64,000 nt of DNA from Macrostomum lignano. Lineage: Eukaryota. A program made the position numbers and the translations under genes. Position 1 is the stretch's first letter, and every line of letters begins with the position of its first letter. The notes beneath the pieces were generated by a model. That model did not search any database and was not told the DNA's origin. It was given only the letters and a program-made list of their open reading frames with translations. The DNA is taken from contig NIVC01001210.1 in the NCBI GenBank assembly GCA_002269645.1, positions 62,001-126,000 on the forward strand, written 5' to 3'. Positions 8,374-63,693 of the stretch are shown one piece after another.

Positions 8374-10554
8374 TACAAAGATACTGCAAAGTCCGTGACT
8401 TACCATCGCTGCAGCTCGGACTCGCTGTTGATATTTGATTTTTTTCGGAATTATTTTTTCTCTACAACGCGCAACGGAAACTGCCTTGTCGAAGCGGCCC
8501 GATTTCGCCCTTTTTATGCCTTTTTTTACGGGGCCGAGCCGGAGTTGGCGTCTTCGCAATGGCTCGCGTTTTTCAAGCACTGCTCGGACAGCTTCTGATT
8601 GGCTGGCCACGCAATCTGCTAGTTTAGAGCTGTGCTTGCAACAAGTCTAGATGTGCAGTTGAAAGGATGCTAATGTTGAAGTTGCATGTCGCGAGACTCT
8701 CTGAGACTCAACACCTTGAAAAGACGTAATACCTACAAAACATAATAAAAAGCAAAATGCTTGAAAGTTCAGAAGGTTAAATAGTCGAACGCATTGCCGC
8801 TCGGCCATCTGAGCTAACTAATGTCAGCTGCTGCCAAGAGTACTGAACTAACAATAAGCTGTATTTTTGTAGAAACTAGACTTTTTGTTATAAATTTTCC
8901 AAGAAACGCTATACAAGCCGTACAAGTACACGCCTGTCTACTTGGTGAATGAGCCTCCGCCAATATCCTTGAACGATAGACTAGCAGTCCAATTCTAATT
9001 AGTCATTTCGTCTTGAATTAATTGCGCAAAGACAGAAGCAGTTCCCTCGGCAACTGCATGTAGGCGTAGGCATGGGAGACTGACTGAAGAGCCGCACCAT
9101 CGACCAAAACGTAAATTGGGCATCGTCTGGCCGACCGGAAGTGCTAACCGGAATTGTGACGTACTTGAACATCGGACACCTGCTTTCAAGTAGCCCAACC
9201 CTTGTTGTTGAGAAAACTATCAGAAAATTTGTCTCATACCCAAATTCCATAACTGCCTAATTCAACAAAGAATGCAGATTCTTCTTAATTGAAAGCAGCT
9301 TTATTTTTAGGTGTTTTTTTCTCAGAAAATATGCAATGTTCGGGAGGACACAGGCAGGGTTACCCGCCTACAGACTGCTCTGCGGTGATTAAAGACTCCT
9401 GCTGTCATTCGGTAACCTAGCCTGTAATTATCACCTGCAATAACAGTTATCATAATTATCACAAATGGAAAGCTGAAACGCTCAAAATACAGCTGCGTTT
9501 TCTAAAAAAAATGTTTTGCATAGATTTGCCTTTTGGATAGCGCTGACTGGGGTTTCGTCATCGACAAACTCAGTGGAAAAAGCTCCACGACAAAGCAATG
9601 GATTGAAGAGACGGTTTTCCGCGGTTTCCAGAAGCATTTCGTGGAAACACAGACTTGCTTTATTAGTAATTCTGTTGATCATATGACAGATGTTATGAAT
9701 TTACGCGTCCTTCTAGTTTAGTTGACATCAGGTTAATTATCTTCTAGTTTTCGGTTCTATGTTGCCGGGGGGCATACGTTCATAATACTGCTAATGAGTC
9801 CTCCACGTAATCTTCAAGTTCACAATTTGCAATTGTGTGCCACGGAAAACAGGAAAATACTCAATCAACGACTGTCATGACATCCGATTTTCTGATTCGC
9901 CTGTTTCAAATCAAGCATATTTTCAGCCAGCGAATTATGCTCGTATTTGTTTCGAATATTTTATTCTAATTTTAACAATATTTCATACCAAATTGCATAT
10001 TTTTATCAGAAATTCGGGGCAATATGAGAGGCAAAATGAGAGAGGTATGAAAATGATTTCTTCGAATATTACACGACTTGCAGGCTTTTATGAGTAGTTT
10101 GAATATTGTTATTATTATTTTTCCTCTTATTATTGTTATTAAATGCACACGCCACGAGGGTGCTGATATTTTATTATATTATTAAGGCAAACAAATTAAT
10201 ACAGCGCAAGAAAAAAAGAAAAAGTAAATTAATAAAAATGGTTTTCGACGAACGGTAGTCAAAATATAATCTCGTACGCAAACAGAGAATTCGAGAATCG
10301 ACTGACCTTATTTTTTCGGTACTCGAGGCAAGTTTCAGTTGAAGAGCCCCTTGTTCCATCCAGCCAGAGAAATTACGAGTACTGAGATCCTGGCCCAACG
10401 CCTTCGCCGACATGGTCTTACAACCAGCGCTGAGGCAATTTTGGCCATTCCGCTGGCTCCTGAGCACATGCAAGCGTGCCAATACTGTACGCAGGCACGC
10501 ACTCACACAGGGTGTACAGCGGCCCTGACTTTATAATCGTCAGGCACGTACACT

Positions 10555-11765
10555 CTCTTCCCCTCTCAATGTACATTGCCCATCCAGAGCATGCCCACTC
10601 TCTGCCCCTCTCAATGTACATTGCCCACCCAGAGCATGCCCACTCTCTGCCCCTCTCAATGTACATTGCCCACCCAGAGCATGCCCACTCTCTGCCCCTC
10701 TCAATGTACATTGCCCACCCAGAGCATGCCCACTCTCTGCCCCTGTCAATGTACATTGCCTATCCAGAGCATGCCCACTCTCTGCCCCTCTCAATGTACA
10801 TTGCCTATCCAGAGCATGCCCACTCTCTGCCCCTCTCAATGTACATTGCCTTATCCAGAGCATGCCCACTCTCTGCCCCTCTCAATGTACATTGCCCACC
10901 CAGAGCATGCCCACTCTCTGCCCCTCTCAATGTACATTGCCCATCCAGAGCATGCCCACTCTCTGCCCCTCTCAATGTACATTGCCTATCCAGAGCATGC
11001 CCACTCACTGCCCCTCTCAATGTACATTGCCTTATCCAGAGCATGCCCACTCTCTGCCCCTCTCAATGTACATTGCCTTATCCAGAGCATGCCCACTCTC
11101 TGCCCCTCTCAATGTACATTGCCCACCCAGAGCATGCCCACTCTCTGCCCCTCTCAATGTACATTGCCCACCCAGAGCATGCCCACTCTCTGCCCCTCTC
11201 AATGTACATTGCCCACCCAGAGCATGCCCACTCTCTGCCCCTCTCAATGTACATTGCCCACCCAGAGCATGCCCACTCTCTGCCCCTGTCAATGTACATT
11301 GCCTATCCAGAGCATGCCCACTCTCTGCCCCTCTCAATGTACATTGCCTATCCAGAGCATGCCCACTCACTGCCCCTCTCAATGTACATTGCCTTATCCA
11401 GAGCATGCCCACTCTCTGCCCCTCTCAATGTACATTGCCTTATCCAGAGCATGCCCACTCTCTGCCCCTCTCAATGTACATTGCCCACCCAGAGCATGCC
11501 CACTCTCTGCCCCTCTCAATGTACATTGCCCACCCAGAGCATGCCCACTCTCTGCCCCTCTCAATGTACATTGCCCATCCAGAGCATGCCCACTCTCTGC
11601 CCCTCTCAATGTACATTGCCTATCCAGAGCATGCCCACTCTCTGCCCCTGTCAATGTACATTGCCTATCCAGAGCATGCCCACTCACTGCCCCTGTCAAT
11701 GTACATTGCCTATCCAGAGCATGCCCACTCTCTGCCCCTGTCAATGTTAATTGACATTGCCCATC
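10555..11765 (+). repeat. 45/46-bp minisatellite, about 26 copies
   Basis: Unit CAGAGCATGCCCACTCTCTGCCCCTCTCAATGTACATTGCCCACC with CCTATC/CTTATC variants; generates the long repetitive ORFs in the track. Confidence 0.97.
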
Positions 11766-12410: not shown

Positions 12411-14831
12411 GCGGTGAAGAGCAAGCATTGGAATGATAAGATAATCAATAATCAAGCATTTCAAGGTGGCTAGCAGATTGGTAACGGTTATAAATATCCA
12501 TGGGTTCGAAAATCGCCACATTAATTTGGAGTTCGTGAAGAGAGTCACATTGGTCCGTTTGATTCACCATAGCACGCATAGCCAGCCCCTGCGAACTCAC
12601 AAACCAACTTCACTTGTAAATAGTGAACACCCAAAATAGTCTGACAACAGTCTCAGATTTTCCCTTAAAGCGATGCAATTCAAACGACACCATTTATCAG
12701 GAAAAAATGGGAATCAGCTTATTCCCTCGACTTTTTGCGTTCTACGCTGCCTGTCCCTCTGAAATTTCTCCGTAGTCTCCAGACTGCACTGCACCGATTG
12801 ACCAAAAAGTCAATCAGCAATTGTCCGAGTGGACTTGCCAGCTTTCAGCCGGACGCCATCTCGGAGTCTGTCATTTGGCGGATTATCGCGAGCGCACGAG
12901 ACAGTTAAGCGATCCCTCATCGTCTTTTTCAATATATCCTATCATTTTTCACCATGGTTGTTGAGTAAAACGCTCTTTAGTATTACATCACTCTAACAAA
13001 GCCTACTTGAAGAAAACCTGTATAACTCCGAGTTTCGCACCCATGAGGACCAACACCCAGGGCACAGAGAAAGCCCGACAGTTGTGGGATGATGTCACTG
13101 AAGGTATTCCGTCAGGGTGCCCCACAGGTACTTGAACCGGATCCGTGAATTCCGCCTGAGAACAGCCGCATCATTTGAACTCGATCTCTGCTTCAGTCTG
13201 AAAATCGCGTTGTGCGAACTGCAACCGACTTCAAAGGGAGCACTTTAAGGTTTTTAACCGGTCTGCTTCTAGGCTATGCAGCTCTGTCTCGAAGAACGAT
13301 TATTAATATAACAGTCTTAGTCTGGGCTTAATTGGATTGATGGAGCTTTGAAGGAGAATCGCCAGCAACTGAATCGAGGGGCCCAGCCAGGGATTTCACG
13401 GGACAACTGTCACGCGCTCCGAAGGAACGCGAGGAATGCACTAGTGAGGACCAAAGAAGGAACATTGTCAGGGACTATAGACGACACGTTCTCAATTTAG
13501 CCATGCAACGAGCGATTTCTTTTCATCAACTGAAATAGAAATAGACATTCTAAAAATGCCATTTTTTCAGGCTCTACTCAATCATGCTCTGCTCTGCTCA
13601 GGCTCAGGCTCTGGTTCCTAAGGGACTCTCAATGACTCGCAAAAACTGGAACTGCAAGCTGCACAAGAGTCAATTAGTTAGAGCAGCTGAACTGATCTCG
13701 CATGGAGTGGCAGGACATTCTCTTTCAGGCAAGAAAGCGACGGATATTGAGCATCGGGTAATGAGCCCTTCTACGGAGGATAACTCACCTGCCGCCCAAC
13801 GCACCTGCGTTGCTTATCATGCCGAACTTGACCCCCAGAGGGTCGCTTCCTGTGCTCGTATCGGAGATTCGTATCGTAGCTTTCAACGCTGGATAAATAT
13901 AAATTGAGAAGACTAAAAGTTTGAGAGAGCCGGGTATATTAGATGGAAGTGAGGGAGAGGACACCCTGTGGCTAGCTATATAAGCCGAAACACCGTGGCC
14001 CTGTTTACGTAGATATACTTAGGCGGGGGTCTCAATTTGTTGTGTTTGGTCTACTCAACTTGCGCTCAACGGGGCATTCACTCTCTCCCCCTGTCTCTCT
14101 CTAAGTATCTGTGAGTTGGGCATCTTGCAGCAATTTTTTTCTGGCTGTTTTTTGCACTGCTCTTATTCTGCACTGTTCCATGTGCGCTGGCTAAAAACAA
14201 CTCAGGTGTAGTCAAGCTCAGCTTCTCATTCTCGTATCTTAAAGAATTAGAAGTCATATAAAGCGCATCAATCCGAGACGTATTAGAAATTGGGCACGTT
14301 TTATGATTATGAAACAGTTCTTGGCATCTACTAATCACATAAATCAACTGTAGCGTCAACAACTAGCCAACGTTTAGACTTGTTTTTTATGTCAAGACGT
14401 CTACAATTTGTTAAGGACAGTGAGCTATTTTACTTAAGCATTTTGCCAAGTTTTTAATCTGCAATATTCATTGTCTAGCAATTTGACGATCATTATTCAC
14501 ATTATTTATGCAGAACAATACATTAATACAAACAATGCGTTTTGTGCAGGATCGTCAAGCAGCATAACAATGCAAAGAATCAGCGGTCGCAGCACGTGAC
14601 AACGATTTGTCACGATTTGTCCTACCGGCGCTCGCCAGACTGTTAAATTGGCTGCTTCACAAACCCCCTTTTGAGCCATAGACAATGAAAAGAAAGTTTT
14701 AAGGGCTTTATTCTGCCTCAGGATTAAAGGCGCCAAGTCGACTTAGAAGATGTTTTATTATCTATGCAATAGTAGTCCTTGGCATTGAAAGAGTCTGCAT
14801 GTGAAAATCTGAAAAATCAAAACGGAATTGT

Positions 14832-17800
14832 TTAGACATAGAAGATGCCCTCGCAGGACGTCGGCCGAGCCATGTTGGAGCCAGCAGGACAGCCAAATGT
14901 CTGCGCGAACTCCGGCATTGTGGACAGGATGCCGTTTACCCTGGAATGGCGGGGAAGTGAGCGATTGAGTGAGCGACTGAGTGAGTTCTTAAGTTCGTGA
15001 GTTCGTGAGTGAGTTCTTGAGTGAATGAGTGAGTGAGTGAGTGAGTGAATGAGTGAGTGTATGAGTGAGTGAGTGAGTGAATGTGAGAGTGAATGAGTGA
15101 GTGAGTGAATGTGTGAGTGAATGAGTGAGTGAGTGAATGAGTGAGTGAGTGAGTTAGAGTGAGTGAGTGAGTGAGCGACTATCGAAAGCAGTAGAGTTTT
15201 TATTCCAGTTTCTCGAACATCGACTGAGTACGGTGATGCGATACCGTAGATGCTATACCATCAGACAGATAATATTCTTCGGAGCCACACTACTTTCAGT
15301 AGACATATCAGAGTTTTACTCATGCATATCTGCAATAGTAAAATACTGGTACACTTAATTTTGGCTCACAGAGTTTCCTCTGGCAGGGCGCGCAGCGTTT
15401 CAGCCTTTGTGACGGAGTAGTCCGGATTGCGACTGTAGCACTGGTTCTGCAATCAGGGGCAGGTGTTAAGGGACAGGTAGTGAGTACGGCTATTGAGGGA
15501 CAGGTATCGAGGGACAGGTATTGGGGGACAGGTATTGAGGGACAGGTATTCAGGGAGAGGTATTGAGGGACAGGTATTCAGGGACAGGTATTGAGGGACA
15601 GGTATTGAGGGACAGGTATGAGGGACAGGTATTGAGGGACAGGTATTGAGGGACAGGTATTGAGGGACAGGTATTGGGGGACAGGTATTGAGGGACAGGT
15701 ATTGAGGGACAGGTATTGAGGGACAGGTATTGAGGGACAGGTATTGAGGGACAGGTATTGAGGGACAGGTATTGAGGGACAGGTATTGAGGGACAGGTTT
15801 TGATGACAGGTATTGAGGGACAGGTATTGAGGGACAGGTATTGAGGGACAGGTATTGAGGGACAGGTATTGATGACAGGTATTGAGGGACAGGTATTGAG
15901 GGACAGGTATTGAGGGACAGGTATTGATGACAGGTATTGAGGGACAGGTATTGAGGGACAGGTATTGATGACAGGTATTGAGGGACAGGTATTCAGGGAG
16001 AGGTATTGAGGGACAGGTATTCAGGGACAGGTATTGAGGGACAGGTATTGATGACAGGTATGAGGGACAGGTATTGAGGGACAGGTATTGATGACAGGTA
16101 TTGAGGGACAGGTATTCAGGGAGAGGTATTGAGGGACAGGTATTGAGGGACAGGTATTGAGGGACAGGTATTGATGACAGGTATTGAGGGACAGGTATTG
16201 AGGGACAGGTATTGATGACAGGTATTGAGGGACAGGTATTCAGGGAGAGGTATTGAGGGACAGGTATTCAGGGACAGGTATTGAGGGACAGGTATTGATG
16301 ACAGGTATGAGGGACAGGTATTGAGGGACAGGTATTGATGACAGGTATTGAGGGACAGGTATTGAGGGACAGGTATTGATGACAGGTATTGAGGGACAGG
16401 TATTGAGGGACAGGTATTGATGACAGGTATTGAGGGACAGGTATTGATGACAGGTATTGAGGGACAGGTATTGAGGGACAGGTATTGAGGGACTTCAAAG
16501 GTAGTCTCTCAGACTTCTGAGAGAACAAAGGTAGAATTCACCTGCGCCCAGGCCAAGAAGAATGTCTGCCGTTGATTCCAGCTGGCCAGAGGCAGCGGCA
16601 ACTCGGTGTCACTTCTCAACCGCAGGTAGGTCCGAATCGACAGTCGAAGGCCGTCAGCAGCGGCAATGATGTTGCGTAGGTGGCGCACAAGTAAATTTTC
16701 AATGCTCACCTGGCAGGAAATGCAAACTGGATTTTGTAGGAATTTATTTTCTTAGAAGTTATTGCATTTTCATCTATAAGTAAAGTGATTATGCTTGATT
16801 CATTTCTCAGCATCCGAGTGAGCTACTTATTAGATGCTATGTTTGAGCAATGGTGTTACATTGACAGACTACCTCATTGTTTTCTCAATAGACTACCTCA
16901 TGGTTACCTCAATAGAATGCTTCATGGTTACCTCAATAGACTGCTTCATGGTTACCTCAATAGAATGCCTCATGGTTACCTCAATAGAATGCTTCATGGT
17001 TACCTCAATAGACTGCTTCATGGTTACCTCAATAGAATGCCTCATGGTTACCTGAATAGAGTGCTTCATGGTTACCTCAATAGAATGCTTCATGGTTACC
17101 TCAATAGAATGCTTCATGGTTACCTCAATAGAATGCTTCATGGTTACCTCAATAGAATGCTTCATGGTTACCTCAATAGAATGCTTCATGGTTACCTCAA
17201 TAGAATGATTCATGGTTACCTTAATAGAATGCCTCATGGTTACCTTAATAAACTTACGTATTTCGGGCCGCTCTGTGTCGCATAGGGCCCGGCCCGCATG
17301 GCTGAGAAGGTCCGGTTCAGACAGGAGGCCTTTTCTACGTAGCCCAGGTAGGTCTCCTGCCGCGACCACATCGGGTTCATGGCTCCGGTCTTGTCAAACA
17401 GCTGGCCTGCCACGGAAAAGGAAGGAAGGAAGGGTGTTCTTGTTTTCTACAGTTGAAATTGCGTTGATTGGCTGTTGAGGGACAGATGAATATGTGGTAG
17501 CCAATCAGAGTTCCCGACCATATTCTCGTCCCGATCGATATTACGCTCGTAAAATTTAACCGAGAAGGTAATATTCTACCAGGCTGTTTTAAAGATGAAT
17601 CCGAAATTCATCTTCAAAACAGCAACCTTCAACCTTCGATGGCCACTTGTGGTACTCTCAACGACCACTTGACGATACCGATCGATCAATGACAACTAAT
17701 GGTACCTGTCAATGAGCACCTCATGATACATTCAATGACACCTGATGGTACCTTCAATGACCATCTGATGGTATCTTCAATGACAACCTCACGGTTCCTT

Positions 17801-20800
17801 CGATGACCATCTGATGGTACCTTCGGTGACCAACTGATGGTACCTTCAATGACCACCTCATGGTAACGTCAATGACCACCTCGCGGTACCTTCGATGACC
17901 AACTGTTGGTACCCTCAACGACCACTTGATGATACCGATCAGACACCTAATTTTACCTGTCAATGAGCACCTCATGATACATTCAATGGCAGCCAGCACA
18001 TGTTACCTTCGATAACTACCTCATGGTACCTTCAATGACCGCCTCATGGTACCGGTCTATTTGCAAAACAAACAATTTCACTCACCGGTGGCGTCGATGG
18101 ACTTCACCAGTTCGGCGCTGATTTTCTCGCCAAGGGTGGCGAAGTTCACGTAATCCGGCAGGCCGCGACCGTAGTAGGGCCACTGCAGCGACCCGGCCGG
18201 GATGGTCAGGCGCACCAGCTGGTTATTCAAGTGCAGATTGGTGTCGTAGGTGGAGCCGTCCCATTCGCTGCGGTCCGGCTGCTTGCCAATACGGCTGCTC
18301 TGGTACTGCAGGTGAAAAGCTTGCCGATTGATGGCCAGCTGCAGTAAGTAGTCGTTGTCGCCGATGCTGAGCTGCTCGATAGGTTTGGTTAAGAGAGGTT
18401 TTTATATACGGAGAGAATGCTTTACAAAATGACTCGTGACTTTAAATTTCATTTTTCCAGTGGCAGATCAAATACCGTTTTGTAGAATGCGTCCAAATAT
18501 GAATCGGACACCTCTGTCTCCGAATATCCTATGAAATCTCTGATGCCGCCAACTTTCTCCTTAGCTTTGGACTTCTCTTCATTTGACAGCCAGGTGAGAC
18601 GATCAATAGACGAAGTCAGCTCATCCTGCAGGGCCTTGTACATGCTGTCGACCTGTAATGACCAGTATTCAGTATCTGACACAGGGTCTTCAGTGTCTTG
18701 ACACAGAACAATCTGTAGCTATCTAACACAGGGTCTTCAGTGTCTTTACACAGAACCATCTGTAGCTATCTGACACAGGGTTTTCAGTGTCTTGACACAG
18801 AACAATCTGTAGCTATCTAACACAGGGTCTTCAGTGTCTTTACACAGAACCATCTGTAGCTATCTGACACAGGGTTTTCAGTGTCTTGACACAGAACAAT
18901 CTGTAGCTATCTAACACAGGGTCTTCAGTGTCTTTACACAGAACCATCTGTAGCTATCTGACACAGGGTCTTCAGTGTCTTGACACAGAACCGTCTGTAG
19001 CTATCTGACACAGGGTCTTCAGTGTCTTGACACAGAACCGTCTGTAGCTATCTGACACAGGGTCTTCAGTGTCTTGACACAGAACCGTCTGTAGCTATCT
19101 GACACAGGGTCTTCAGTGTCTTGACACAGAACCGTCTGTAGCTATCTGACACAGGGTCTTCAGTGCGTGACACAGGCTATTACGAGTTACACAGGCTCGG
19201 AGAATTCCATGTTCCTTCCCAACTGCACTTGAGACAGCCAAAATAAACGTGTCTGCACTCACTTCTCCCTTGACAGAACTCGACAAGTGGTCAGCCACAA
19301 ACAGAGCGCTGACAGCGTGCCGCATCCAGTGACGCGTCTTTCTGTAGCAGTAGTCAAACCTGTTCTCAAACGCATACGCTTGCGTTGCAATCACCAATTG
19401 GAACTCGCGTTTGGCGTGAACGTAACCGCTGGACAGGTCTCCGACGTGACGACTGATGATGCGCCAGTTGATATAGTTACTCAGCTTCCTGTCGATGTAG
19501 ACAATGTTTCACTGGCTAGGATTCCAAATGATTTGATAATTACGAGTACTTAGGGTACTTTCAGTGGTCCTTGAACATACCTCTTCGACTGGGTTGGATC
19601 CGCCATCAGCTGGCGAATGTACTGGACCATCTTGACCAGGTAATCGGGGTCCTGTACAGCCACACTTGATGGTGCATTTGAGCCAAAGGCCGTCCTAAAG
19701 AAGTTGCTCCACTGGATTGGTTGGTAAGTGAAGTCCATGGTGCTGAGAGCTACAAGGTTGCTCGGATCCAGCGGCGGCTTCTCAGGACTCGCAGCATCCT
19801 GCGCAATCTGGAAGAAATGGTCATTTTTCTGGGCTGACTTTTTAGCAGTTAATGCATGCTTGGGACAAACTGAGCTGCAGTGGATCCATAGGTCAATAGA
19901 TTCATATGATGTTAGCTGGACTCGTGGATGAAAGCTGGTTTGGGTTCAAAATGATTTGCTGTCGGTATGCTGTGTTCAAAATGGTTTGATGAGTTCAAGA
20001 AGACTTTGAGTAGGTTCAAGAAGGTTTTGAGTGGGTTCAAGATGGCTTTGAGTAGATTCAAAGAGACGAGTGGATTCAAGATGGCTTATCAAGTCTTTCC
20101 TCCTCTTACCCTGGCCAGTTCCGTTTCAACCTCCATCACATCGACCACAAAGGTGTCCACCCGCGACAACGCTTCTGACTGGTCGAGCTTGCCGGGCTCA
20201 GTGTCAGCCTGCAGAAAGGCGGCCACGGTCCGAATGTAGGTGGAGTAGGCTTGCCGGTGCTTGGCGCTCGTCTCCTGTGGTTGCGTAGGCGATGATGAAT
20301 AGCGGTCACGTGATTAGGGGAATGGAGCTCTCAATTACTTAAGCGACGAGACGCCTGCTAAATAGAAATCACCTGCTTACATCGCTTGACAAGTAAGACG
20401 AAGTTCGCATTTCGATTCCACCGCGATTGATCTGAAAAAATATATTTGTACTTTAATTAAAAGTTACTCGGGCCGACAGGAAACAGGGGAGGATTGAAGA
20501 CTCAAAGAAGGGATAGAATAATAATAATAATTGATTACACCTGCCCCAATGGGCAGAGGTGCAACCGACAGCTCAGCCGCAGTTAGGCTGTTCACGGCTG
20601 TTCAGTCCAAGGACTGGGGTGAACTAATGTTGGCACCCATTTTACAGCTGGGTGAACTGAAGAAATGCAGAGTTAAGTGTTGCTCAAGGACACAAATTGC
20701 TCTGAGTGGGATCGAAAATTGAACCCCCGATCTTCAAGTCGTGAGTCCGACGCTCTAACCACTGGGCTACAACGAAGAAAGAGACAAAAAGGCTTAACCA

Positions 20801-21718
20801 CGGAGCAAGATAACGGTAGGGCCAAAGGAAGGAGAGATAGCGGCTCTGTATAGGCTCTTTAACACCGCCATCAAATCGCACGACTGACGCGAGAGGCACA
20901 ACAAAAGTATGTACAAGCCGACTAATCCCACAAAATAAGGGCTCATTTAATGGCAGTTCATCCCAGGAGCTCAAATGTCTCACCGAAATTGTGTACTTGT
21001 CATTGTCTAGGAAGTTCTCGGTCAACAAGTACTCAAAGAAGACATCGGCACCGTACTCCAAATAGGCCTGGGAGATCATCAAATTCAAGTCGAACTGATC
21101 GACACTCGACGCATTCAGCAGGTAGAGGTTGGACGACAGGAACTGGGCGAGGATGCCTCCCCGAAACCGCTCGGTGATCAAGTCGTTGGTGCAGATTTCA
21201 AATAGTTTCTTCACCTTGCGCTCGTAGGAATCGGTCGTGTTCCGTCTGACGGGGCTGCGCAGAATCTCTTCAAGCCGGTCCTCGTTCTCTCTGCTCAGCT
21301 CGCCGGGGATGGTCCTCTCCTGCACTCCCGGATTCAGGCGCATGATGTACGGCGCCAGGCCGCACGCGTAGCTGTAAAAGTCTTCGCACGGGCTCGCTGT
21401 TACGTTCGCCAGGGCCACGCTGGAGGCTGCGCGCAGCAGGCACGGCTGGCTCTGACAGGTATTGCCGAGTTCTATGCCTCCGCCGGCACCTCCGCCACCT
21501 CCTCCGTGAGTGGCCGCCAAGGTGATGATCAATATGAACATGACGAATGTGACGCCGACAAGTACATTCTCTAGCAGAGTGTGGTTGTTGGGATCCAGTT
21601 GGTACTTCACTCGCTGCCACAGGTCCCCGCTGTTGCCGCTGCCGGAGCCGCCGCCGCCGCTGCCGCCGCTGTTGCGGGAGGTGTCGAATTCGACATTGAT
21701 AGATTCCGCACTCGCCAT
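14832..21718 (-). CDS. Neprilysin/ECE-like M13-family type II membrane protein, predicted catalytically inactive; 11 exons, about 789 aa
   Basis: Exons: 21718-20984, 20431-20381, 20274-20110, 19807-19581, 19488-19263, 18652-18476, 18371-18086, 17406-17258, 16709-16542, 15446-15370, 14940-14832. All introns are GT-AG with consistent phases. N-terminal TM segment (VLVGVTFVMFILIITLAA). M13 motifs: PCEDFYSYACG, LSNYINWRII, IPAGSLQWPYY, QTFFLAWAQ, VNGILSTMPEFAQTFGCPAGSNM. Confidence 0.9.
14960..15178 (+). repeat. (GAGT)n/(GAAT) microsatellite in the last intron of the M13 gene
   Basis: Imperfect GAGT run seen directly. Confidence 0.95.
15490..16495 (+). repeat. 14-bp minisatellite (GAGGGACAGGTATT, with GATGACAGGTATT variants), about 70 copies, M13 intron 9
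   Basis: Tandem array seen directly; fills nearly the whole intron 16541-15447. Confidence 0.97.
16865..17250 (+). repeat. 24-bp minisatellite, about 16 copies, M13 intron 8
   Basis: Unit CATGGTTACCTCAATAGAATGCTT; begins right at the donor of exon 8. Confidence 0.95.
17620..18055 (+). repeat. Degenerate ~23-bp tandem array, M13 intron 7
   Basis: Unit approximately AATGACCACCTGATGGTACCTTC with many substitutions. Confidence 0.8.
18675..19170 (+). repeat. 47-bp minisatellite, about 10 copies, M13 intron 5
   Basis: Unit CTATCTGACACAGGGTCTTCAGTGTCTTGACACAGAACCGTCTGTAG. Confidence 0.95.
20520..20773 (-). mobile_element. tRNA-derived SINE, family 1 (CORE-like central domain), in M13 intron 1
   Basis: Minus strand: A-box TAGCCCAGTGG and B-box-like GGTTCAATTTTCGATCCC, then GTGTCCTTGAGCAACACTTAACTCTGCATTTCTTCAGTTCACCCAGCTGTAAAATGGG, and an (ATT)n tail. 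Homologous copies at ~26962-27168 and ~38957-39200. Confidence 0.8.
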
Positions 21719-22135
21719 GGTAGACCTGAGTTCGATGAGCGCGACTCGTTTGCCGATTTTATTTTATTCAACTCACCCCAATATAAACTCGTTCGCCTTC
21801 TCAATCTTCAGGAGCAGAGTTCGTTTCTGCTTATCTTTGGCCCGAATGAAGATTGAGCAGCTGCCCGCTTGCTGGCTTCTACCCGGGCGCAGATAAGGCG
21901 GGACTGAAGTTGGTCCCTCTGTGCCATTCTGCACCACAACTCCTCCTCAGCTCTCCATTATCAGCATTCGACAAAAAATACTTTCGATTCTCTAACCAGT
22001 TTTACGAGTATGTACACCAGTCCGTTAACGAAGTTACGCGATTTTATACCGAGAAAAAGTTCAAAAAATTTTCACTAGCTCCAACTAGCTCGTATGATAA
22101 TCGCGCATAGTGGAACAATTTGGAATCGTCAAGAC

Positions 22136-22391
22136 CAGGGTAGACAATCTCCGGCCCGCGGGCCACATGCGGCCCTTAAAGCCTCTCTATCCGGCCCATT
22201 CCGTGTCCTTTGAAACTTCGCAATGGCAATCCGGCCCGCCCAAGATGTGTCTCTTCTCAGCTCTCTTCGATCTCTAATCTCCTCTCTCCTTTCCTTTCCT
22301 CTCTTCTTGTCTCCCTTGTCTCCCTTCTCTACTGTTCTCTGCACTAGGTTCTCTCTATCTGGCCCTTGGGGTAAAAACTTGCCGACCCTTG
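22136..22391. mobile_element. hAT (Charlie-like) MITE, 256 bp
   Basis: 8-bp TSD GTCAAGAC at 22128-22135 and 22392-22399. Imperfect TIRs CAGGGTAGACAA / TTGCCGACCCTTG. Subterminal CGGCCCGCGGGCCACATGCGGCCC motif typical of Charlie-type hAT ends. Confidence 0.85.
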
Positions 22392-23104
22392 GTCAAGACG
22401 GAGTGCATGTGGGTTTTTAATGTGCACTTAACAGCATTCAAAACCATGACAATGCATTTAAAATTAACTAAGGTAACGGTTTCCGCACAGTGCCGAGAAT
22501 TTGCGATCAGACCTTTACGCTAAATAATACTGATCAAATAATGACAAGTCAAAACTTACATGTACTTATTAGTTCCCATTCGCTAGAGAGGTACAATGAA
22601 TTGACAGCAGATATTATGTGTATTTGAAGACAATAAAGTAAAGCTGAGAAGCTGAATATGCACAAGAAAACAAGATTTACCCAGTTTTTATACACAAGTG
22701 CCACTCCGCACATATCGTGAGTAGTCAATGAGACTATAACTTCTCATTCAAAATTCAACCCAGGAGTTACGCAACTACGCTGTGAGGAGCCTCCTTTTCA
22801 AAAAATTCAAAACAATTTCCAAATCAGACCTTACGCACGGCTTACTTGGTGTTTATGTAGATATTGATGCACGTTGAAAAAATGAACACCGAAAACCATT
22901 GTAAATATATACTTTCACCCAGACGCAATGGCAATTAGTTTTGGCCATTATGCCATAGTTGCTCCACAATGTACTTTTTACCCCATGTACAAATTTCATC
23001 ACGTGACTGCTTTCCCGTGTTTATTGTCTGTCCACCCTTAGTTGTCTTGCATTTGCGTGAAACAAGTGTGGAATAAAGACATCTGTGCTGGCATAATACA
23101 AGTA

Positions 23105-24135
23105 CAATGGTCGATTGTGTCTATGGCTTTAGGGTCAGACAATTGTATATTGTGTTTATATGGCTTTGGAGTCAGACAGTTGTATATTGTGTCTATGGCT
23201 TTGGAGTCAGACAGTTGTAGATTGTGTCTATATGGCTTTGGAGTCAGACAGTTGTAGATTGTGTCTATATGGCTTTGGAGTCAGACAGTTGTAGATTGTG
23301 TCTATATGGCTTTGGAGTCAGACAGTTGTAGATTGTGTCTATATGGCTTTGGAGTCAGACAGTTGTATATTGTGTCTATGGCTTTGGAGTCAGACAGTTG
23401 TAGATTGTGTCTATGGCTTTGGAGTCAGACAGTTGTAGATTGTGTCTATGGCTTTGGAGTCAGACAGTTGTAGATTGTGTCTATGGTTTTGGAGTCAGAC
23501 AGTTGTAGATTGTGTCTATGGCTTTGGAGTCAGACAGTTGTAGATTGTGTCTATGGCTTTGGAGTCAGACAGTTGTAGATTGTGTCTATGGCTTTGGAGT
23601 CAGACAGTTGTAGATTGTGTCTATGGCTTTGGAGTCAGACAGTTGTAGATTGTGTCTATGGCTTTGGAGTCAGACAGTTGTATATTGTGTCTATGGCTTT
23701 GGAGTCAGACAGTTGTAGATTGTGTCTATATGGCTTTGGAGTCAGACAGTTGTAGATTGTGTCTATATGGCTTTGGAGTCAGACAGTTGTAGATTGTGTC
23801 TATATGGCTTTGGAGTCAGACAGTTGTAGATTGTGTCTATATGGCTTTGGAGTCAGACAGTTGTATATTGTGTCTATGGCTTTGGAGTCAGACAGTTGTA
23901 GATTGTGTCTATGGCTTTGGAGTCAGACAATTGTATATTGTGTCTATGGCTTTGGAGTCAGACAATTGTAGATTGTGTCTATGGCTTTGGAGTCAGACAA
24001 TTGTAGATTGTGTCTATGGCTTTGGAGTCAGACAATTGTAGATTGTGTCTATGGCTTTGGAGTCAGACAATTGTAGATTGTGTCTATGGCTTTGGAGTCA
24101 GACAATTGTAGATTGTGTCTATGGCTTTGGAGTCA
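23105..24135 (+). repeat. 35/37-bp minisatellite, about 29 copies
   Basis: Unit CTATGGCTTTGGAGTCAGACAGTTGTAGATTGTGT. Confidence 0.97.
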
Positions 24136-43318: not shown

Positions 43319-44208
43319 GTTAGCAACCCATTATATTCATTGATGTGTTGGCTAGATTAGCAATCCATTCTATTCCAATTGATTTGTGATTGGCTAGATT
43401 AGCAATCCATTCTATTCCAATTGATTTGCGATTGGCTAGATTAGCAATCCATTCTATTCATTGATTAGTGTTGGCTAGATTAGCAATCCATTCTATTCCA
43501 ATTGATTTGTGATTGGCTAGATTAGCAACCCATTATATTCATTGATGTGTTGGCTAGATTAGCAACCCATTATATTCATTGATGTGTTGGCTAGATTAGC
43601 AACCCATTATATTCATTGATGTGTTGGCTAGATTAGCAATCCATTCTATTTTAATTGATTTGCGATTGGCTAGATTAGCAATCCATTCTATTCATTGATT
43701 AGTGTTGGCTAGATTAGCAATCCATTCTATTCCAATTGATTTGTGATTGGCTAGATTAGCAATCCATTCTATTCCAATTGATTTGTGATTGGCTAGATTA
43801 GCAATCCATTCTATTCATTGATTAGTGTTGGCTAGATTAGCAATCCATTCTATTCCAATTGATTAGTGTTGGCTAGATTAGCAATCCATTCTATCCCAAT
43901 TGATTTGTGATTGGCTAGATTAGCAATCCATTCTATTCATTGATTAGTGTAGGCTAGATTAGCAATCCATTCTATTCCAATTGATTTGTGATTGGCTAGA
44001 TTAGCAATCCATTCTATTCCAATTGATTTGTGATTGGCTAGATTAGCAATCCATTCTATTCCTTCATTAATGCAGGCTAGATTAGCAATCCATTCTGTTC
44101 CTTCATTGATGTAGGCTAGATTAGCAATCCATTCTGTTCCTTCATTGATGTAGGCTAGATTAGCAATCCATTCTATTCCTTCATTGATGAAGGCTAGATT
44201 AGCAATCC
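43319..44208 (+). repeat. Variant minisatellite with a constant core and 33-42-bp units
   Basis: Core GGCTAGATTAGCAA(T/C)CCATT followed by a few recurring linker types. Confidence 0.95.
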
Positions 44209-44614
44209 AATATACTAAAAATTCCAATCTATTTTCTGATTAATATTGGCTGGACAATATAAAATAACTCATTCAACCCCATATCCCGTCTATCCACTTC
44301 CGTGAACACTGTCCCAGCAGCAATTTCATTAGCATTGAGCAGTCATTCTGTTTGTACACCCTGGGCTGTGTGCTGGCCATCCAAACATCCCTGTTTGTCC
44401 CCACGGCCTTGCAAATCCCATCCCAGCTACCTTCCTGGGAACGGAAGCAAAAGTGTGCGCTCGTATTTCCAAATCGAAAGCAGAATTTCTCTCACAGAGC
44501 ATACTATGCGCGCACATGGGCACATGCTTTCTTAAGCCTTGTGCAAACAGTTCCGTCGGCTGATGAGGACAAACTTTATACCAGGATATTCAGCTCGTAC
44601 CTGGCTGTTTCTTT

Positions 44615-45714: not shown

Positions 45715-46415
45715 GTCTGACTCCTTCTTGAGCCACCTATCTTCTTCCTGACCCCACCTGTCTTCTTCCTGACCCCACCTGTCTATCTGACTTCTTCCTG
45801 ACCCCACCTGTCTATCTGACTTCTTCCTGACCCCACCTGTCTATCTGACTTCTTCCTGACCCCACCTGTCTATCTGACTTCTTCCTGACCCAACTGTCTA
45901 TCTGACACCTTCTAAACCCCACCTGGGTCTATCTGACTCCTTCCCGACCCCACCTGTGTCTATCTGACTCCTTCCTGACCCCATCTGTCTATCTGACCTC
46001 TTTCCTAACCCCACCTGCGTCTATCTGACTCCTTCCTGACCCCATCTGTCTATCTGACCTCTTTCCTAACCCCACCTGCGTCTATCTGACTCCTTCCTGA
46101 CCCCACTTGTGTCTATCTGACTCCTTTCTGACCCCACTTGTGTCTATCTGACTCCTTCCTGACCCACCTGTCTATCTGACTTGTTTCTGACCCACTTGTG
46201 TCTATCTGACTCCTTCCTGACCCCATCTGTCTATCTGACCTCTTTCCTAACCCCACCTGCGTCTATCTGACTCCTTCCTGGCCCCACTTGTGTCTATCTG
46301 ACTCCTTTCTGACCCCACTTATCTCTATCTGACTCCTTCCTGACCCACCTGTCTATCTGACTTGTTTCTGACCCACTTGTGTCTATCTGACTCCTTCCTG
46401 ACCCCACCTGTCTCT
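45715..46415 (+). repeat. ~29-31-bp pyrimidine-rich minisatellite
   Basis: Unit approximately CCCCACCTGTCTATCTGACTTCTTCCTGA with several variants. Confidence 0.92.
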
Positions 46416-48399: not shown

Positions 48400-50182
48400 G
48401 ACAGACAGACACTAAAATAGACAGGCATACATTAAAATAGACAGGCAGACGGACACAAGTCACATGGACATAAGACACTAAGACTCAAAGACACAGGCAC
48501 TAAGACAATAAGACACTAAGACACAGACAATAAGACAATAAGACAATAAGACAACAAGACACTAAGACAACAAGACACTAAGACACAGACAATAAGACAC
48601 TAAGACACTATGACAATAAAACACTAAGACACTAAGACAATAAGACACTAAGACACAGACAATAAGACACTAAGACACAGACAATAAGACACTAAGACAC
48701 TATGACAATAATACACTAAGACACAGACAATAATACACTAAGACACAGACAATAATACACTAAGACACTATGACAATAAAACACTAAGACACAGACAATA
48801 AGACACTAAGACACTATGACAATAAAACACTAAGACACAGACAATAAGACACTAAGACACTATGACAATAATACACTAAGACACTATGACAATAAGACAC
48901 TAAGACACTATGACAATAATACACTAAGACACTAAGACAATAAGACACTAAGACACAGACAATAATACACTAAGACACTATGACAATAAGACACAAAGAC
49001 ACAGACAATAAGACACTAAGACACTATGACAATAATACACTAAGACACAGACAATAAGACACTAAGACACAGACAATAATACACTAAGACACTATGACAA
49101 TAATACACTAAGACACAGACAATAAGACACTAAGACACAGACAATAATACACAAAGACACAGACAATAAGACACTCAGACACTAAGACAATAAAACACTC
49201 AGACAATAAGACAATAAGACAACAAGACACTAAGACAACAAGACACTAAGACACAGACAATAAGACACTAAGACACAGACAATAATACACTAAGACACTA
49301 TGACAATAATACACTAAGACACAGACAATAAGACACTAAGACACAGACTATAAAACACTAAGACACAGACAATAAGACACTAAGACACAGACAATAAAAC
49401 ACTAAGACACAGACAATAAGACACTAAGACACAGACAATAAGACACTAAGACACAGACAATAAGACACTAAGACACTATGACAATAATACACTAAGACAC
49501 AGACAATAATACACTAAGACACAGACAATAAGACACTAAGACACAGACAATAAGACACTAAGACACAGACAATAATACACTAAGACACTATGACAATAAG
49601 ACACAAAGACACAGACAATAAGACACTAAGACACAGACAATAATACACTAAGACACAGACAATAAGACACTAAGACACAGACAATAATACACTAAGACAC
49701 TATGACAATAATACACTAAGACACAGACAATAAGACACTAAGACACAGACAATAATACACTAAGACACAGACAATAAGACACTCAGACACTAAGACAATA
49801 AAACACTCAGACACTAAGACAATAAAACACTAAGACACAGACAATAAGACACTAAGACACAGACAATAAGACACTAAGACACAGACAATAAAACACTAAG
49901 ACACAGACAATAAGACACTAAGACACAGACAATAAGACACTAAGACACAGACAATAAGACACTAAGACACAGACAATAATACACTAAGACACAGACAATA
50001 ATACACTAAGACACAGACAATAAGACACTAAGACACAGACAATAAGACACTAAGACACAGACAATAAAACACCAAGACACAGACAATAATACACTAAGAC
50101 ACAGACAATAAGACACTAAGACACAGACAATAATACACTAAGACACAGACAATAATACACTAAGACACAGGCACTAAGACCT
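48400..50182 (+). repeat. About 1.75-kb compound satellite built from AGACACT/AGACAC/AGACAATA blocks
   Basis: Dominant unit AGACACTAAGACACAGACAATA (22 bp) with shuffled sub-blocks. Confidence 0.97.
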
Positions 50183-51157
50183 AATGAAACGAAGCACCAG
50201 TTCTGACTTTGACAATGACGTCGCCAGACGGTTTCTACAACCGACCCAGCTATCCGGTCGATGCCAGTCCATTGTCATCAACAACCGGGCCGCAGCCACG
50301 GCTAATTGGATCCATAATGTTCAGACGGCCAGAAGCAAAGATCACAGCAGACCATCGGTTACTTAGCCGTTCCATCCGAGCTCGATTGGTCCCCGGCCAG
50401 GAACAGGCAAAGCGACTTTTCCGCCATGTCGCGGCGCCCGTGTTCAGCCCGGCCGGGCTATTGAACGCTAATTAAAAGCCGCAGATCTGCCTGACTGGCA
50501 GGAGGCCGGTGGTGGGGGGTTGGTCTGGCTGGCGGACAAACGATTGCCGGAAATGAAACGGCACCCGGCACAGAAACATTCAGCCAGACAGACAGGCGGA
50601 CAGATAGATGGATAGAGGAGGCGAATCAGCGATGGAGAAAGAAATGGGCCCGCCAGATGCCAGCAGAGCCACATGCGGAACACAAACACCATGGGGGGCT
50701 GGGGTGCTTATCCTTCCGTTCAGGTGGGCCGCTGGGATTCCCAGTGCAGCTTTCTCTTTTCTCTCCAACTCTGCGCGGCCCGAAAATGCCCAGCGGATGA
50801 TGAGATGGCGCAGCGAAGTGTCCCACCGCAGCTGCTGATGATGCATGCATCGGTGTGGACAAGTGGGATAATTGGGTGGTGGGGTAGGGTGATTCCGGTG
50901 CCGGCTTGGAGGGACAACAGTTGATTGGCAGGTCCAAGAGCTGCCAGTTGGAGCAAATTTTGAGTGGGACATTTTCAGCCTTTTAAGGTAGATGCTGGTA
51001 AATCTAAAGTTTTGAATAGCTTTTATTTCAAGCCAGCTGGCAGATTTTCTTGTGTCAGATTGTTGGAAAATTGCAGAATTGAGGCTTCAATCCTCGCCCT
51101 GATGCTGCACCACGGTAGCAGACAGGGTTGGGTGAGCGTTGGTTCAGTCACTTCCGA

Positions 51158-57700: not shown

Positions 57701-59037
57701 TCTGAACTGATAACTATAAGTAAATATGAGTCATTAGCATCATCAGTGAAATATAAAAATCTTGTTTAGAAAATGAATTCTTTAATCGTAAAAAATTCGA
57801 CACCTGCCCTCGTAACCATCGAAATCCACTCCCGCAACCACCAGAATTCACTCCTGCAACCACCAGAATTCACTCCTGCAACCACCAGAATTCACTCCCG
57901 CAACCACCAGAATTCACTCCTGCAACCACCAGAATTCACTCCTGCAACCACCAGAATTCACTCCTGCAACCACCAGAATTCACTCCTGCAACCACCAGAA
58001 TTCACTCCTGCAACCACCAGAATTCACTCCTGCAACCACCAGAATTCACTCCCGCAACCACCAGAATTCACTCCCGCAACCACCAGAATTCACTCCTGCA
58101 ACCACCAGAATTCACTCCTGCAACCACCAGAATTCACTCCTGCAACCACCAGAATTCACTCCTGCAACCACCAGAATTCACTCCTGCAACCACCAGAATT
58201 CACTCCCGCAACCACCAGAATTCACTCCTGCAACCACCAGAATTCACTCCCGCAACCACCAGAATTCACTCCTGCAACCACCAGAATTCACTCCCGCAAC
58301 CACCAGAATTCACTCCTGCAACCACCAGAATTCACTCCCGCAACCACCAAAATTCACTCCAGCAACCGCTACTCAGCCAGTAAAAACTCTACCCTAATTG
58401 ACGTCCCCAAGTGAAACCGAACTCCAAACATCTTTAGGCCGACGACGCTGCTGACTGCAGCGAGTTTCGCTTCCCAGACATCGTCAAAGCTGTTGGATCC
58501 GACGTGTCGCCGCTGCCACCACCGTCGCCGCCGCCGGCGCTGCCATCTCACAGCTGCCGTTCCGGTGGCTCGGCCACTCTAGTTATTGACAACGCCAGGG
58601 CGCGCAGCCCAGGTCGCATGCTGCGCGACAAGTTCCCAAGCTTCGGCTACCTCGCCGACTACCCGTCAAGCGAACAGGCCTCAGGTAGTCAGCAGGCGCA
58701 GCAGCAGAAGCATCAACGCCGGCACCAGTTCCAGATGCTCACCATGCGCAGCTGCAACGGCTACGAGTCGTTCCAGCAGCAGCAGCCTCGCCCACCCAGA
58801 GGCCGAGGCCTCGGCTCCGACAGGTTGCCGCGTAAAGTCTACGGCGCAAGCGAAGGCAGCGACGTCCTGGACGACGCGGGAGTGCACGGCGCCGCAGTTC
58901 GGGAAAATCGGTACGCCGGACTGAGCGAAGGAGCGCTGCCCGATCCGAAAGCCGGATATGCCGTGCTGACGGGCGCAGAGCTGGTGGTCAATCCAGCAGT
59001 GTGCAGGACGCCCTACATGACGTCGAGCTTTGTCTGA
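54757..59037 (+). CDS. Protocadherin, 7 cadherin repeats + TM + cytoplasmic tail; 4 exons, about 1088 aa
   Basis: Exons: 54757-56877, 57010-57490, 57590-57654, 58438-59037; GT-AG with consistent phases. Signal peptide present. EC1 has DREVLC...C. DxNDxxP-type linkers: DVNDRRP, DANDNRP, DCNDNYP, DENDNRP, DEDDSAP, DVNDNAP. TM segment FFILLCLAAVVFVIFLLLLAVLIYV. C-terminus ...TSSFV. Confidence 0.93.
57826..58362 (+). repeat. 22-bp minisatellite, about 24 copies, protocadherin intron 3
   Basis: Unit CAACCACCAGAATTCACTCC(T/C)G. Confidence 0.97.
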
Positions 59038-62848: not shown

Positions 62849-63693
62849 ATGAGCAAGAAGAAGTCGTCAAAGCGCGAGCAGTCGAGAAATCCGGACGATG
62901 TGATGAGCTCGCTGACTCAGGAGCAGATTCACGAGTACTATGAGGCCTTCTGCATGTACGATCACGATGGCAGCGGCACCATCGACACTTCGGAGCTGGC
63001 CATCATCATGACGTCCATGGGACAGAACGTCACCGAAGATGAGCTCGAGAAGCTGGTGCACGAAGTGGACGCCGATGGTAAGAGAGCTGGATTCCAACTG
63101 AGCTAGATTCCAACTGAGCTAGATTCCAACTGAGCTAGATTCCAACTGAGCTAGATTCCAACTGAGCTAGATTCCAACTGAGCTAGATTCCAACTGAGCT
63201 AGATTCCAACTGAGCTAGATTCCAACTGAGCTAGATTCCAACTGAGCTAGATTCCAACTGAGCTAGATTCCAACTGAGCTAGATTCCAACTGAGCTAGAT
63301 TCCAACTGAGCTAGATTCCAACTGAGCTAGATTCCAACTGAGCTAGATTCCAACTGAGCTGGATTCCAACTGAGCTAGATTCCAACTGAGCTGGATTCCA
63401 ACTAGCTAGATTCCAACTGAGCTAGATTCCAACTGAGCTGGATTCCACCTGAGCTGGATTCCGACCATGCTGCATGGGATTTCTACTCTTAGTCCCTAAT
63501 TATATCGTGCTCCACTATCAAGCAAAATGAACTCAAAATTCTATATTGCAGGCAGCGGCACGATAGACTTCCCAGAGTTCGTCTCTCTAATGGTCAACCA
63601 CATCAACAAGCCGGTCACAAAAGAAGAGATCAAAAGTGCTTTTATGGTATTCGACATTGACAACAAAGGCTACATACCATCTGAGGAGCTCAG
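62849..63693 (+). CDS. Calmodulin-/troponin-C-like EF-hand protein, 5' partial (continues beyond the window)
   Basis: Exon 62849-63077 (donor G|GTAAG) and exon 63552-63693 (acceptor TTGCAG|GC; donor AG|GTTGGT). LTQEQIHEYYEAF helix; EF loops DHDGSGTIDTSE, DADGSGTIDFPE and DIDNKGYIPSEE. Confidence 0.88.
63085..63462 (+). repeat. 16-bp minisatellite, about 23 copies, filling intron 1 of the calmodulin-like gene
   Basis: Unit GAGCTAGATTCCAACT; starts a few bases after the donor. Confidence 0.97.

Follow-up and report, generated by a model that had tools for sequence, protein, structure and literature searches.

Among membrane-bound non-peptidase proteins in the M13 (neprilysin) family, Drosophila Gone early (Goe) is, to our knowledge, the only one that has been functionally studied. 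Goe (Nepl2, CG9634) is a type II non-peptidase M13 protein of germ-cell membranes that modulates signaling (PMC4242634, PMC11266112), and it was the only M13 example in a 2024 review of pseudopeptidases (PMC11266112). Homologs of this kind, also called neprilysin-like, are defined by significant similarity to M13 and the absence of at least one of four motifs, HExxH, ENIAD, NAY/FY and CxxW (PMC8223033). Conserved non-peptidase M13 expansions were described by Bland et al. in 2008 (PMC2259306), inactivity is predicted for 21 of Drosophila's 28 M13 genes (PMC8223033), and the Drosophila Nepl proteins are expressed and conserved (PMC8223033, PMC2259306, PMC7822871). Here, we analyzed a 64-kb stretch of the genome of the free-living flatworm Macrostomum lignano (assembly GCA_002269645.1, Mlig_3_7, contig NIVC01001210.1, positions 62,001 to 126,000; hereafter the window, whose own numbering is used for all coordinates) and the M13 gene on its minus strand, Mlig020054.g1. 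We are fairly confident that this gene encodes a maintained non-catalytic M13 surface protein. An initial annotation of the locus had proposed such a protein and had cautioned that inactive M13 paralogs occur in other animals, which is correct (PMC2259306, PMC8223033, PMC4242634).

Over 12 kb, the window showed 100% identity to contig NIVC01001210.1. When spliced by hand, Mlig020054.g1 consisted of 11 exons (21718-14832), each bounded by AG/GT, and 10 GT-AG introns. The 2370-nt coding sequence, which begins with the ATG at 21718 and whose stop codon ends at 14832, is open and encodes 789 residues. The open 11-exon frame of the initial annotation was thereby reproduced, and it is the same as GenBank PAA70713.1 (BOX15_Mlig020054g1, P0006), except for one extra 20-nt 5' exon in GenBank.

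The motif remnants reported initially (AELVK, RNIIAAADG, TNLHL and LRALP) and their coordinates proved exact, and two independent alignments (phmmer and MAFFT) agreed on the motif readings. In neprilysin numbering, the HEITH site (H583, E584, H587) was replaced by AELVK at codons 18116-18102 in exon 7 (18086..18371), with His583 changed to Ala, His587 changed to Lys and Glu584 retained. The same exon carries the NAFY (N542-Y545) remnant TNLHL (18242-18228), i.e., NLHL, in which Asn542 alone is retained and Ala543 is Leu; two paralogous proteins described below have ALSM and ALTM at this position and do not conserve Asn542. Exon 9 (16542..16709) contains RNIIAAADG (16676-16650) in place of GENIADNGG. 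ENIAD thus reads NIIAA, with Asn replacing the third zinc ligand Glu646 and Ala replacing Asp650. In exon 10 (15370..15446), DxHSP reads LRALP (15395-15381), with Ala at the position of the transition-state His711. The substrate-binding Arg717 is Leu within TLVNG, a segment that spans the exon 10/11 junction on the minus strand. The C-terminal CxxW is CEGIF, with Phe for Trp, as part of CEGIFYV (14855-14835) in exon 11 (14832..14940), where the stop codon ends at 14832. Most residues of the hydrophobic S1' pocket were also lost, and polar or charged residues were present instead (Ile558 to Ser, Met579 to Glu, Val580 to Lys, Val692 to Asn and Trp693 to Gln). The Asp590 equivalent is retained, and the Glu584 and Asp590 equivalents are invariant among the close Macrostomum relatives (hereafter, the Macrostomum clade). 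The initial claim that the zinc ligands and His711 were gone therefore stands, and the extent of loss is wider than had been described, including Arg717, the Trp of CxxW and most of the S1' pocket. That picture also needs amendment in the other direction, in that the catalytic Glu584 and Asp590 are kept, as is Asn542 in Mlig020054.g1.

With all four defining motifs degenerate, every examined feature of M13 homology present and every examined feature of catalytic competence missing, the flatworm protein, judged by its aligned residues, fits the class of non-peptidase M13 homologs as defined in PMC8223033, and we infer that it is not a zinc peptidase. Two other readings of the alignments were rejected. 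A register in which the Glu of SIENLL stands in for Glu646 was discarded, as ENIAD is paired with RNIIAA by MAFFT and Glu is missing at that position in the paralogs (DLNPVV and DINPII). The phmmer alignment seemed to show that Arg102 is retained, but the larger MAFFT alignment did not bear this out, and no claim is made for it.

Membership in the M13 family was clear at the level of both sequence and predicted fold. Mlig020054.g1 matched Pfam Peptidase_M13_N (E 5.6e-59, 200.9 bits, gathering cut-off 32) and Peptidase_M13 (E 1.3e-25, 90.7 bits, gathering cut-off 24.5). Neprilysin was the best solved relative in phmmer (4.5e-49, residues 87-783), the alignment with ECE-1 (endothelin-converting enzyme 1) also ran from end to end, and identity to neprilysin, ECE-1 and ECEL1 was 22-24% across the whole ectodomain. 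The AlphaFold model, for which an alignment of 10 sequences was used, had a mean predicted local distance difference test score (pLDDT) of 74 and a predicted template modeling score (pTM) of 0.73, and adopted the two-domain neprilysin/ECE fold. Foldseek comparison of this model gave target-normalised template modeling scores (TM-scores) of 0.78 with neprilysin, 0.80 with ECE-1 and 0.83 with bacterial PepO. These results bear out the family assignment; alignment to Pfam and human MME and structure prediction were among the checks suggested in the initial annotation. Only one hydrophobic segment was found in the protein (residues 46-74, Kyte-Doolittle >1.6). As judged from the family, the topology would be that of a type II membrane protein, with a cytoplasmic tail of ~45 residues, a transmembrane helix, a glycine-rich stalk and an M13 ectodomain. 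Exon 1 (20984..21718) encodes the tail from the ATG at 21718, the transmembrane anchor (21577-21509), the stalk and the beginning of M13_N. The ectodomain has four N-glycosylation sequons, and the 10 cysteines of the protein aligned to the neprilysin pairs C56/61, 79/734, 87/694, 142/410 and 620/746, i.e., five of six disulfides. The only neprilysin disulfide without a counterpart, C233-C241, is mammal-specific (PMC2259306). The membrane anchor and the structural cysteines are thus kept, as had been noted initially.

A second copy of the gene, Mlig020054.g2 (PAA81376.1, contig NIVC01000535.1), is intact and has the same 11 exons and splice sites. The two copies differed in 25 codons, 16 of which were synonymous and 9 non-synonymous, corresponding to 0.005 non-synonymous (dN) and 0.030 synonymous (dS) substitutions per site and a dN/dS of 0.17 (binomial test against the neutral expectation, p=1.6e-5). 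In one of these differences, at residue 612 just before the dead HExxH, g1 has Ser (EKISAELVK), and g2 carries the residue that is canonical in M13 (xIGHExxH), Gly (EKIGAELVK). Two full-length relatives share the dead site. The M. lignano paralog Mlig014428 (P0008), 43% identical to Mlig020054.g1, has AELIK at the HExxH position, and so does a transcript-derived protein of another species (P0002), encoded on an intronless 2.5-kb contig from run SRR30276804, which is 44% identical to Mlig020054.g1 and 55% identical to Mlig014428. In both, Glu646, His711 and Arg717 are missing as well. Across these three lineages, a 21-residue window around the vestigial HExxH helix was 57% invariant, compared with 34% overall, which placed it in the 97th percentile. 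No frame disruption, no lost splice site and no dN/dS near 1 was found. Since g2 is intact, dN/dS is 0.17, the paralogs share the dead site and the helix is conserved, the gene is not decaying; Mlig020054.g1 is under purifying selection, and the dead active-site helix is constrained as well. A dN/dS near 1, combined with a lack of expression, had been named initially as evidence that would count against a maintained protein. The value obtained, together with the absence of the ligands in two deeper relatives, instead supports that inference. A third and more distant M. lignano lineage, Mlig004184.g1/g2 (P0057/P0170), has HEIYQ at the HExxH position, and M. lignano therefore contains at least three lineages of degenerate proteins, each with duplicated copies. 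Two older M. lignano predictions (P0019 and P0036) consist of Mlig014428 fragments fused to unrelated or frameshifted sequence and look like annotation artefacts of an earlier assembly.

In an exhaustive search for more distant relatives with HMMER, 1.84 billion representative proteins yielded 6047 M13 homologs. Nearly all of the top ~30 matches (E 1e-97 to 1e-45) were catalytically degenerate, and proteins with canonical HExxH/ENIAD motifs ranked lower. Identities of these top matches were 25-31% in HMMER and 23-31% over the trimmed tree columns. They came from an annelid (Owenia), gastropods (Patella, Nucella, Haliotis, Aplysia, Physella, Littorina and Gigantopelta), a brachiopod (Lingula), a nemertean (Tubulanus), a rotifer (Seison) and a cephalochordate genus (Branchiostoma, two species), and also included M. 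lignano Mlig004184. Most had been automatically named "endothelin-converting enzyme homolog". In a neighbor-joining tree of 126 sequences, 28 grouped with the Macrostomum proteins with a bootstrap value of 97, and the same grouping was obtained with a value of 82 when all catalytic-motif columns were masked. Among clade members with an identified organism, there were no arthropods. A word-indexed homolog search with a 23-sequence profile of the clade returned only the three Macrostomum proteins, and taxonomic spread was not extended by it. Identity of the query was 27.9% to clade members and 23.5% to canonical M13 proteins; long-branch attraction alone would give the opposite pattern, which argues against it as the source of the grouping.

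Members of this clade share features other than loss of the active site. Conserved features are LSxDYxHAxREF, FVxDV, an inserted AGPY, VN replacing RI/VxG, and Phe or Tyr replacing the C-terminal Trp. The signature residues D295, F313, D316, R402, S421, Y424, H426, R429, Y654 and N765 (P0006 numbering) are all present in Mlig020054.g1 and absent from canonical M13 proteins. In the flatworm gene, the FVxDV...ETELA segment is encoded by exon 3 (20110..20274), the signature GDLSSGYVHAKREF (19442-19401) by exon 5 (19263..19488) and the AGPY insertion (17293-17258) by exon 8 (17258..17406). The GDLSSGYVHAKREF signature was the best conserved stretch across the three Macrostomum-clade lineages. An N-terminal transmembrane segment was found in every one of the 21 full-length members from outside the Macrostomum clade, and in all three Macrostomum-clade proteins tested. 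Of the 27 members that do not belong to the Macrostomum clade, none kept His711 or Trp693, 15 kept His587, 8 kept Glu646 and 6 kept His583, and only 2 had all three zinc ligands. His711, the NAFY motif, Trp693 and the Trp of CxxW were absent in all sampled members of the whole clade. The AELxK form was specific to the Macrostomum clade, and the pattern of ligand loss varied between the other members. The retention counts suggest that efficient catalysis was lost early and that the zinc site then decayed piecemeal. Mlig020054.g1 thus appears to belong to an old clade of degenerate, transmembrane-anchored M13 homologs present in Spiralia and amphioxus. It is a tentative proposal, to which we give a little less than an even chance, that this is an undescribed clade older than the protostome-deuterostome split, in which catalysis was lost early, the zinc ligands were shed piecemeal and a new signature (LSxDYxHAxREF, FVxDV and AGPY) was kept. 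If true, a conserved non-proteolytic function at the cell surface has been overlooked because of the database name "endothelin-converting enzyme homolog". Literature searches, in a library that is itself incomplete, found nothing on Mlig020054.g1, on M13 pseudo-peptidases of M. lignano or on a degenerate clade spanning several phyla, and no experimental study of the clade members from Owenia, Lingula, mollusks, Tubulanus, Seison or Branchiostoma.

Several other explanations of the gene were considered. The protein might still be an enzyme, through an alternative exon, migrated metal ligands or a different chemistry that uses the retained Glu. The invariance of the Glu584 and Asp590 equivalents in the Macrostomum clade would fit such a possibility, and some pseudoenzymes have relocated catalytic residues, according to reviews (PMC10211241). 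However, none of the three zinc positions has a ligand, and His711 and Arg717 are also gone. When six-frame translations of the whole window were scanned, a profile of the canonical HExxH region matched only exons 7 and 8 and a profile of the ENIAD region had zero matches. No HE..H string occurred in any frame at 14000-23000, and no second M13 gene was detected within the window. As the profile scans and the string search were empty elsewhere, a hidden catalytic exon within the window is ruled out, including the alternative exon with an intact HExxH that the initial annotation had named as a refuting case. Retained enzyme activity thus seems very improbable. We give still less credence to a decaying or unitary pseudogene whose open frame is a recent accident, which would be hard to believe in spite of the degeneration of all catalytic motifs and the highly duplicated DV1 genome of M. 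lignano, a source of redundant copies (PMC5730564). Such a gene would not be expected to keep a 2370-nt frame over 11 exons with intact splice sites in two genomic copies, or the low dN/dS given above; the same substitutions are found in a full-length paralog and a full-length homolog of another species, each less than half identical to it, and the gene model is transcript-derived.

A further rival is a peptide decoy, a type of role that has been proposed for Drosophila Nepl15 and for PHEX (PMC7822871, PMC8223033). The ancestral cleft would then still bind the substrates of active M13 peptidases and protect or sequester them. This idea is consistent with the modeled fold and its closed two-domain architecture, with the strong conservation of the active-site helix within the clade and with the retention of Glu584 and Asp590 (and of Asn542 in Mlig020054.g1), and it has the literature precedent just cited. 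On the other hand, the backbone binders are gone (Ala543 and Arg717 are both Leu, and Asn542 is not conserved in the paralogs), and the S1' pocket now has Ser, Glu, Lys, Asn and Gln at 558, 579, 580, 692 and 693. In Nepl15, by contrast, Arg717 is preserved and the S1' pocket is hydrophobic (PMC7822871). The decoy function raised in the initial annotation is therefore weakened by the replacement of the substrate-binding residues and the hydrophobic pocket, and we consider it unlikely. Our preferred explanation remains a non-catalytic cell-surface protein, which would work by binding instead of cleavage. The substrate groove appears to be remodeled to polar and charged residues, and few segments are better conserved than the vestigial active-site helix and the clade-specific LSxxYVHAKREF. 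Because the old groove was remodeled while the dead helix and the clade signature were conserved, recognition of a new ligand or partner protein is favored, in which the protein might be a receptor, a co-receptor or a modulator of signaling at the cell surface. By these residues, simple sequestration of classical neprilysin substrates would be less likely than a new ligand or partner. Within a maintained non-catalytic protein, we regard such a binding role, which draws on the analogy with Gone early, as evenly balanced between holding and failing.

Some points weigh against these conclusions. The selection test between g1 and g2 is shallow, with only 25 differing codons, and the multi-phylum clade was obtained by neighbor-joining with a simple distance correction, not by maximum likelihood. 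Statements about the cavity rely on alignment to neprilysin residues, not on measurement in three dimensions, and the retained Glu584 and Asp590 equivalents formally leave room for residual or different chemistry. Transcript support for the junctions and expression of Mlig020054.g1 is indirect, because it follows from how the GenBank annotation of M. lignano was built, namely from RNA-seq transcripts that were assembled with genome guidance and filtered by expression (PMC5730564). In the M. lignano literature searched, full text and supplements included, there was no mention of Mlig020054, Mlig014428 or Mlig004184, and none of the expression tables encountered contained Mlig020054.g1.

With regard to the 5' end, the extra exon in the GenBank annotation is a coding mini-exon, ATGGGAACTAATAAGTACAT (22560..22579, minus strand), with its own in-frame ATG, which adds MGTNKYMST; use of this upstream ATG is uncertain. 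In L001, a related transcript of another species, the start codon is the counterpart of the Met at 21718, and an in-frame TAA lies 6 nt before it. Given this start and the stop codon just before it, the conserved start is probably the ATG at 21718 that had been chosen initially, and the 20-nt extension may be 5' untranslated region. Trans-splicing is common in M. lignano (PMC5730564), and the true 5' end of Mlig020054.g1 could be set by it. The 51-nt exon 2 (20381..20431) has GT-AG boundaries that are kept in the g2 copy, and exon 6 (18476..18652) was likewise placed by the gene model and comparison with g2. Exon 4 (19581..19807) has a second acceptor 9 nt downstream (19798). Use of the two AGs accounts for a difference between the GenBank protein (P0006), which contains IAQ (ELARIAQDAAS), and UniProt A0A1I8GIA4 (P0001), which does not (ELARDAAS). 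Alignment favors the upstream acceptor, because homologs have residues at the IAQ position (LANITR).

Six of the ten introns were composed largely of minisatellites (14956-15175, 15455-16493, 16884-17250, 17686-18053, 18673-19175 and 19974-20062), with periods of 4, 14, 24, 23, 47 and 21/42 bp. In the largest of these intron arrays, AGGGACAGGTATTG occurs 75 times over 1 kb. Compared with g1, the g2 copy is shorter by 1.5 kb, and the alignment of the two breaks at the intron arrays, suggesting that much of this difference is due to array length. These arrays fit the reported 15% content of simple and tandem repeats in the M. lignano genome. A tRNA-like stretch, GCCCAGTGGTTAGAGCG...GGTTCAATTTTCGATCCC, was also noticed on the minus strand of intron 1 (~20700-20790). 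It had no match in ARAGORN or Rfam and may be a fragment of a tRNA-derived short interspersed nuclear element. Other large tandem arrays in the window are located at 23104-24135, 10551-11747, 43320-44209, 45758-46413, 48467-50184, 57823-58367 and 63084-63462. A 35-bp array of ~1 kb lies directly upstream of Mlig020054.g1, and the 1.7-kb array of 22-bp units at 48467-50184 is responsible for a strong AT skew there.

The annotated neighboring genes are all on the same strand as the M13 gene, and a functional link with it is not evident. Upstream is a calcium-binding EGF-repeat protein of 1373 residues (window ~32579-29962, L002 1-2618). The remaining annotated neighbors have no Pfam match and encode proteins of 267 residues (window ~27856-26662, L002 4724-5918), 189 residues (window ~13991-12042, L002 18589-20538) and 127 residues (window ~8481-8017, L002 24099-24563).

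Dead relatives of neprilysin are well known from Drosophila and nematodes, and few of them, for example Goe, Frma and Nepl15, have an assigned biology. The finding of a dead M13 homolog would not in itself surprise a specialist; Mlig020054.g1 is a clear case under selection, in a species with established transgenesis, and what was observed for the clade offers a useful lead. Many of the proteins from lophotrochozoans and amphioxus that were automatically named endothelin-converting enzymes are unlikely to be peptidases, which bears on peptidase inventories and on inferences about neuropeptide turnover in the phyla concerned. A real multi-phylum clade would also offer a natural series of stepwise active-site decay for studying how a peptidase fold is repurposed.

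Compared with known systems, the flatworm protein resembles Goe in being a type II transmembrane M13 homolog with a large ectodomain that lacks HExxH and ExxxD, and it may share the peptidase-independent surface action of Goe (PMC4242634, PMC11266112). The two proteins differ in the remnants of these motifs (EAxxD and V in Goe, AELVK and N in the flatworm protein) and in the length of the cytoplasmic domain (129 residues in Goe, ~45 in the flatworm protein). Goe, compared here by its published description, comes from an arthropod, whereas the identified members of the flatworm clade include none, and the germline and epidermal growth factor receptor (EGFR) role belongs to Goe. With the Nepl proteins and the expansions described by Bland et al., the flatworm protein has in common M13 similarity, loss of at least one of the four motifs and predicted inactivity (PMC8223033, PMC2259306, PMC7822871). 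However, most Nepl proteins are secreted with signal peptides, whereas the flatworm protein and its whole clade are transmembrane-anchored; Nepl15 differs further in the Arg717 and S1' pocket discussed above (PMC7822871), and the Drosophila expansions are lineage-specific, whereas the clade of the flatworm protein spans several phyla. Human neprilysin (MME), ECE-1 and ECEL1 have the same two-domain fold (TM-scores of 0.78-0.80), type II topology and five common disulfides, but in the flatworm protein their catalytic and substrate-binding determinants are replaced, the C-terminal CxxW is CxxxF and an extra AGPY hairpin precedes the ENIAD helix. The nearest relatives are the proteins named "ECE homolog" or "ECE-like 1" in Owenia, Lingula, Patella, Haliotis, Aplysia, Physella, Tubulanus, Seison and Branchiostoma. 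They have the signature residues and the N-terminal transmembrane segment, none of them keeps His711 or Trp693 and the zinc ligands are missing from most, and they differ from the flatworm protein in that their ligand loss is varied, whereas AELxK is found in the Macrostomum clade only.

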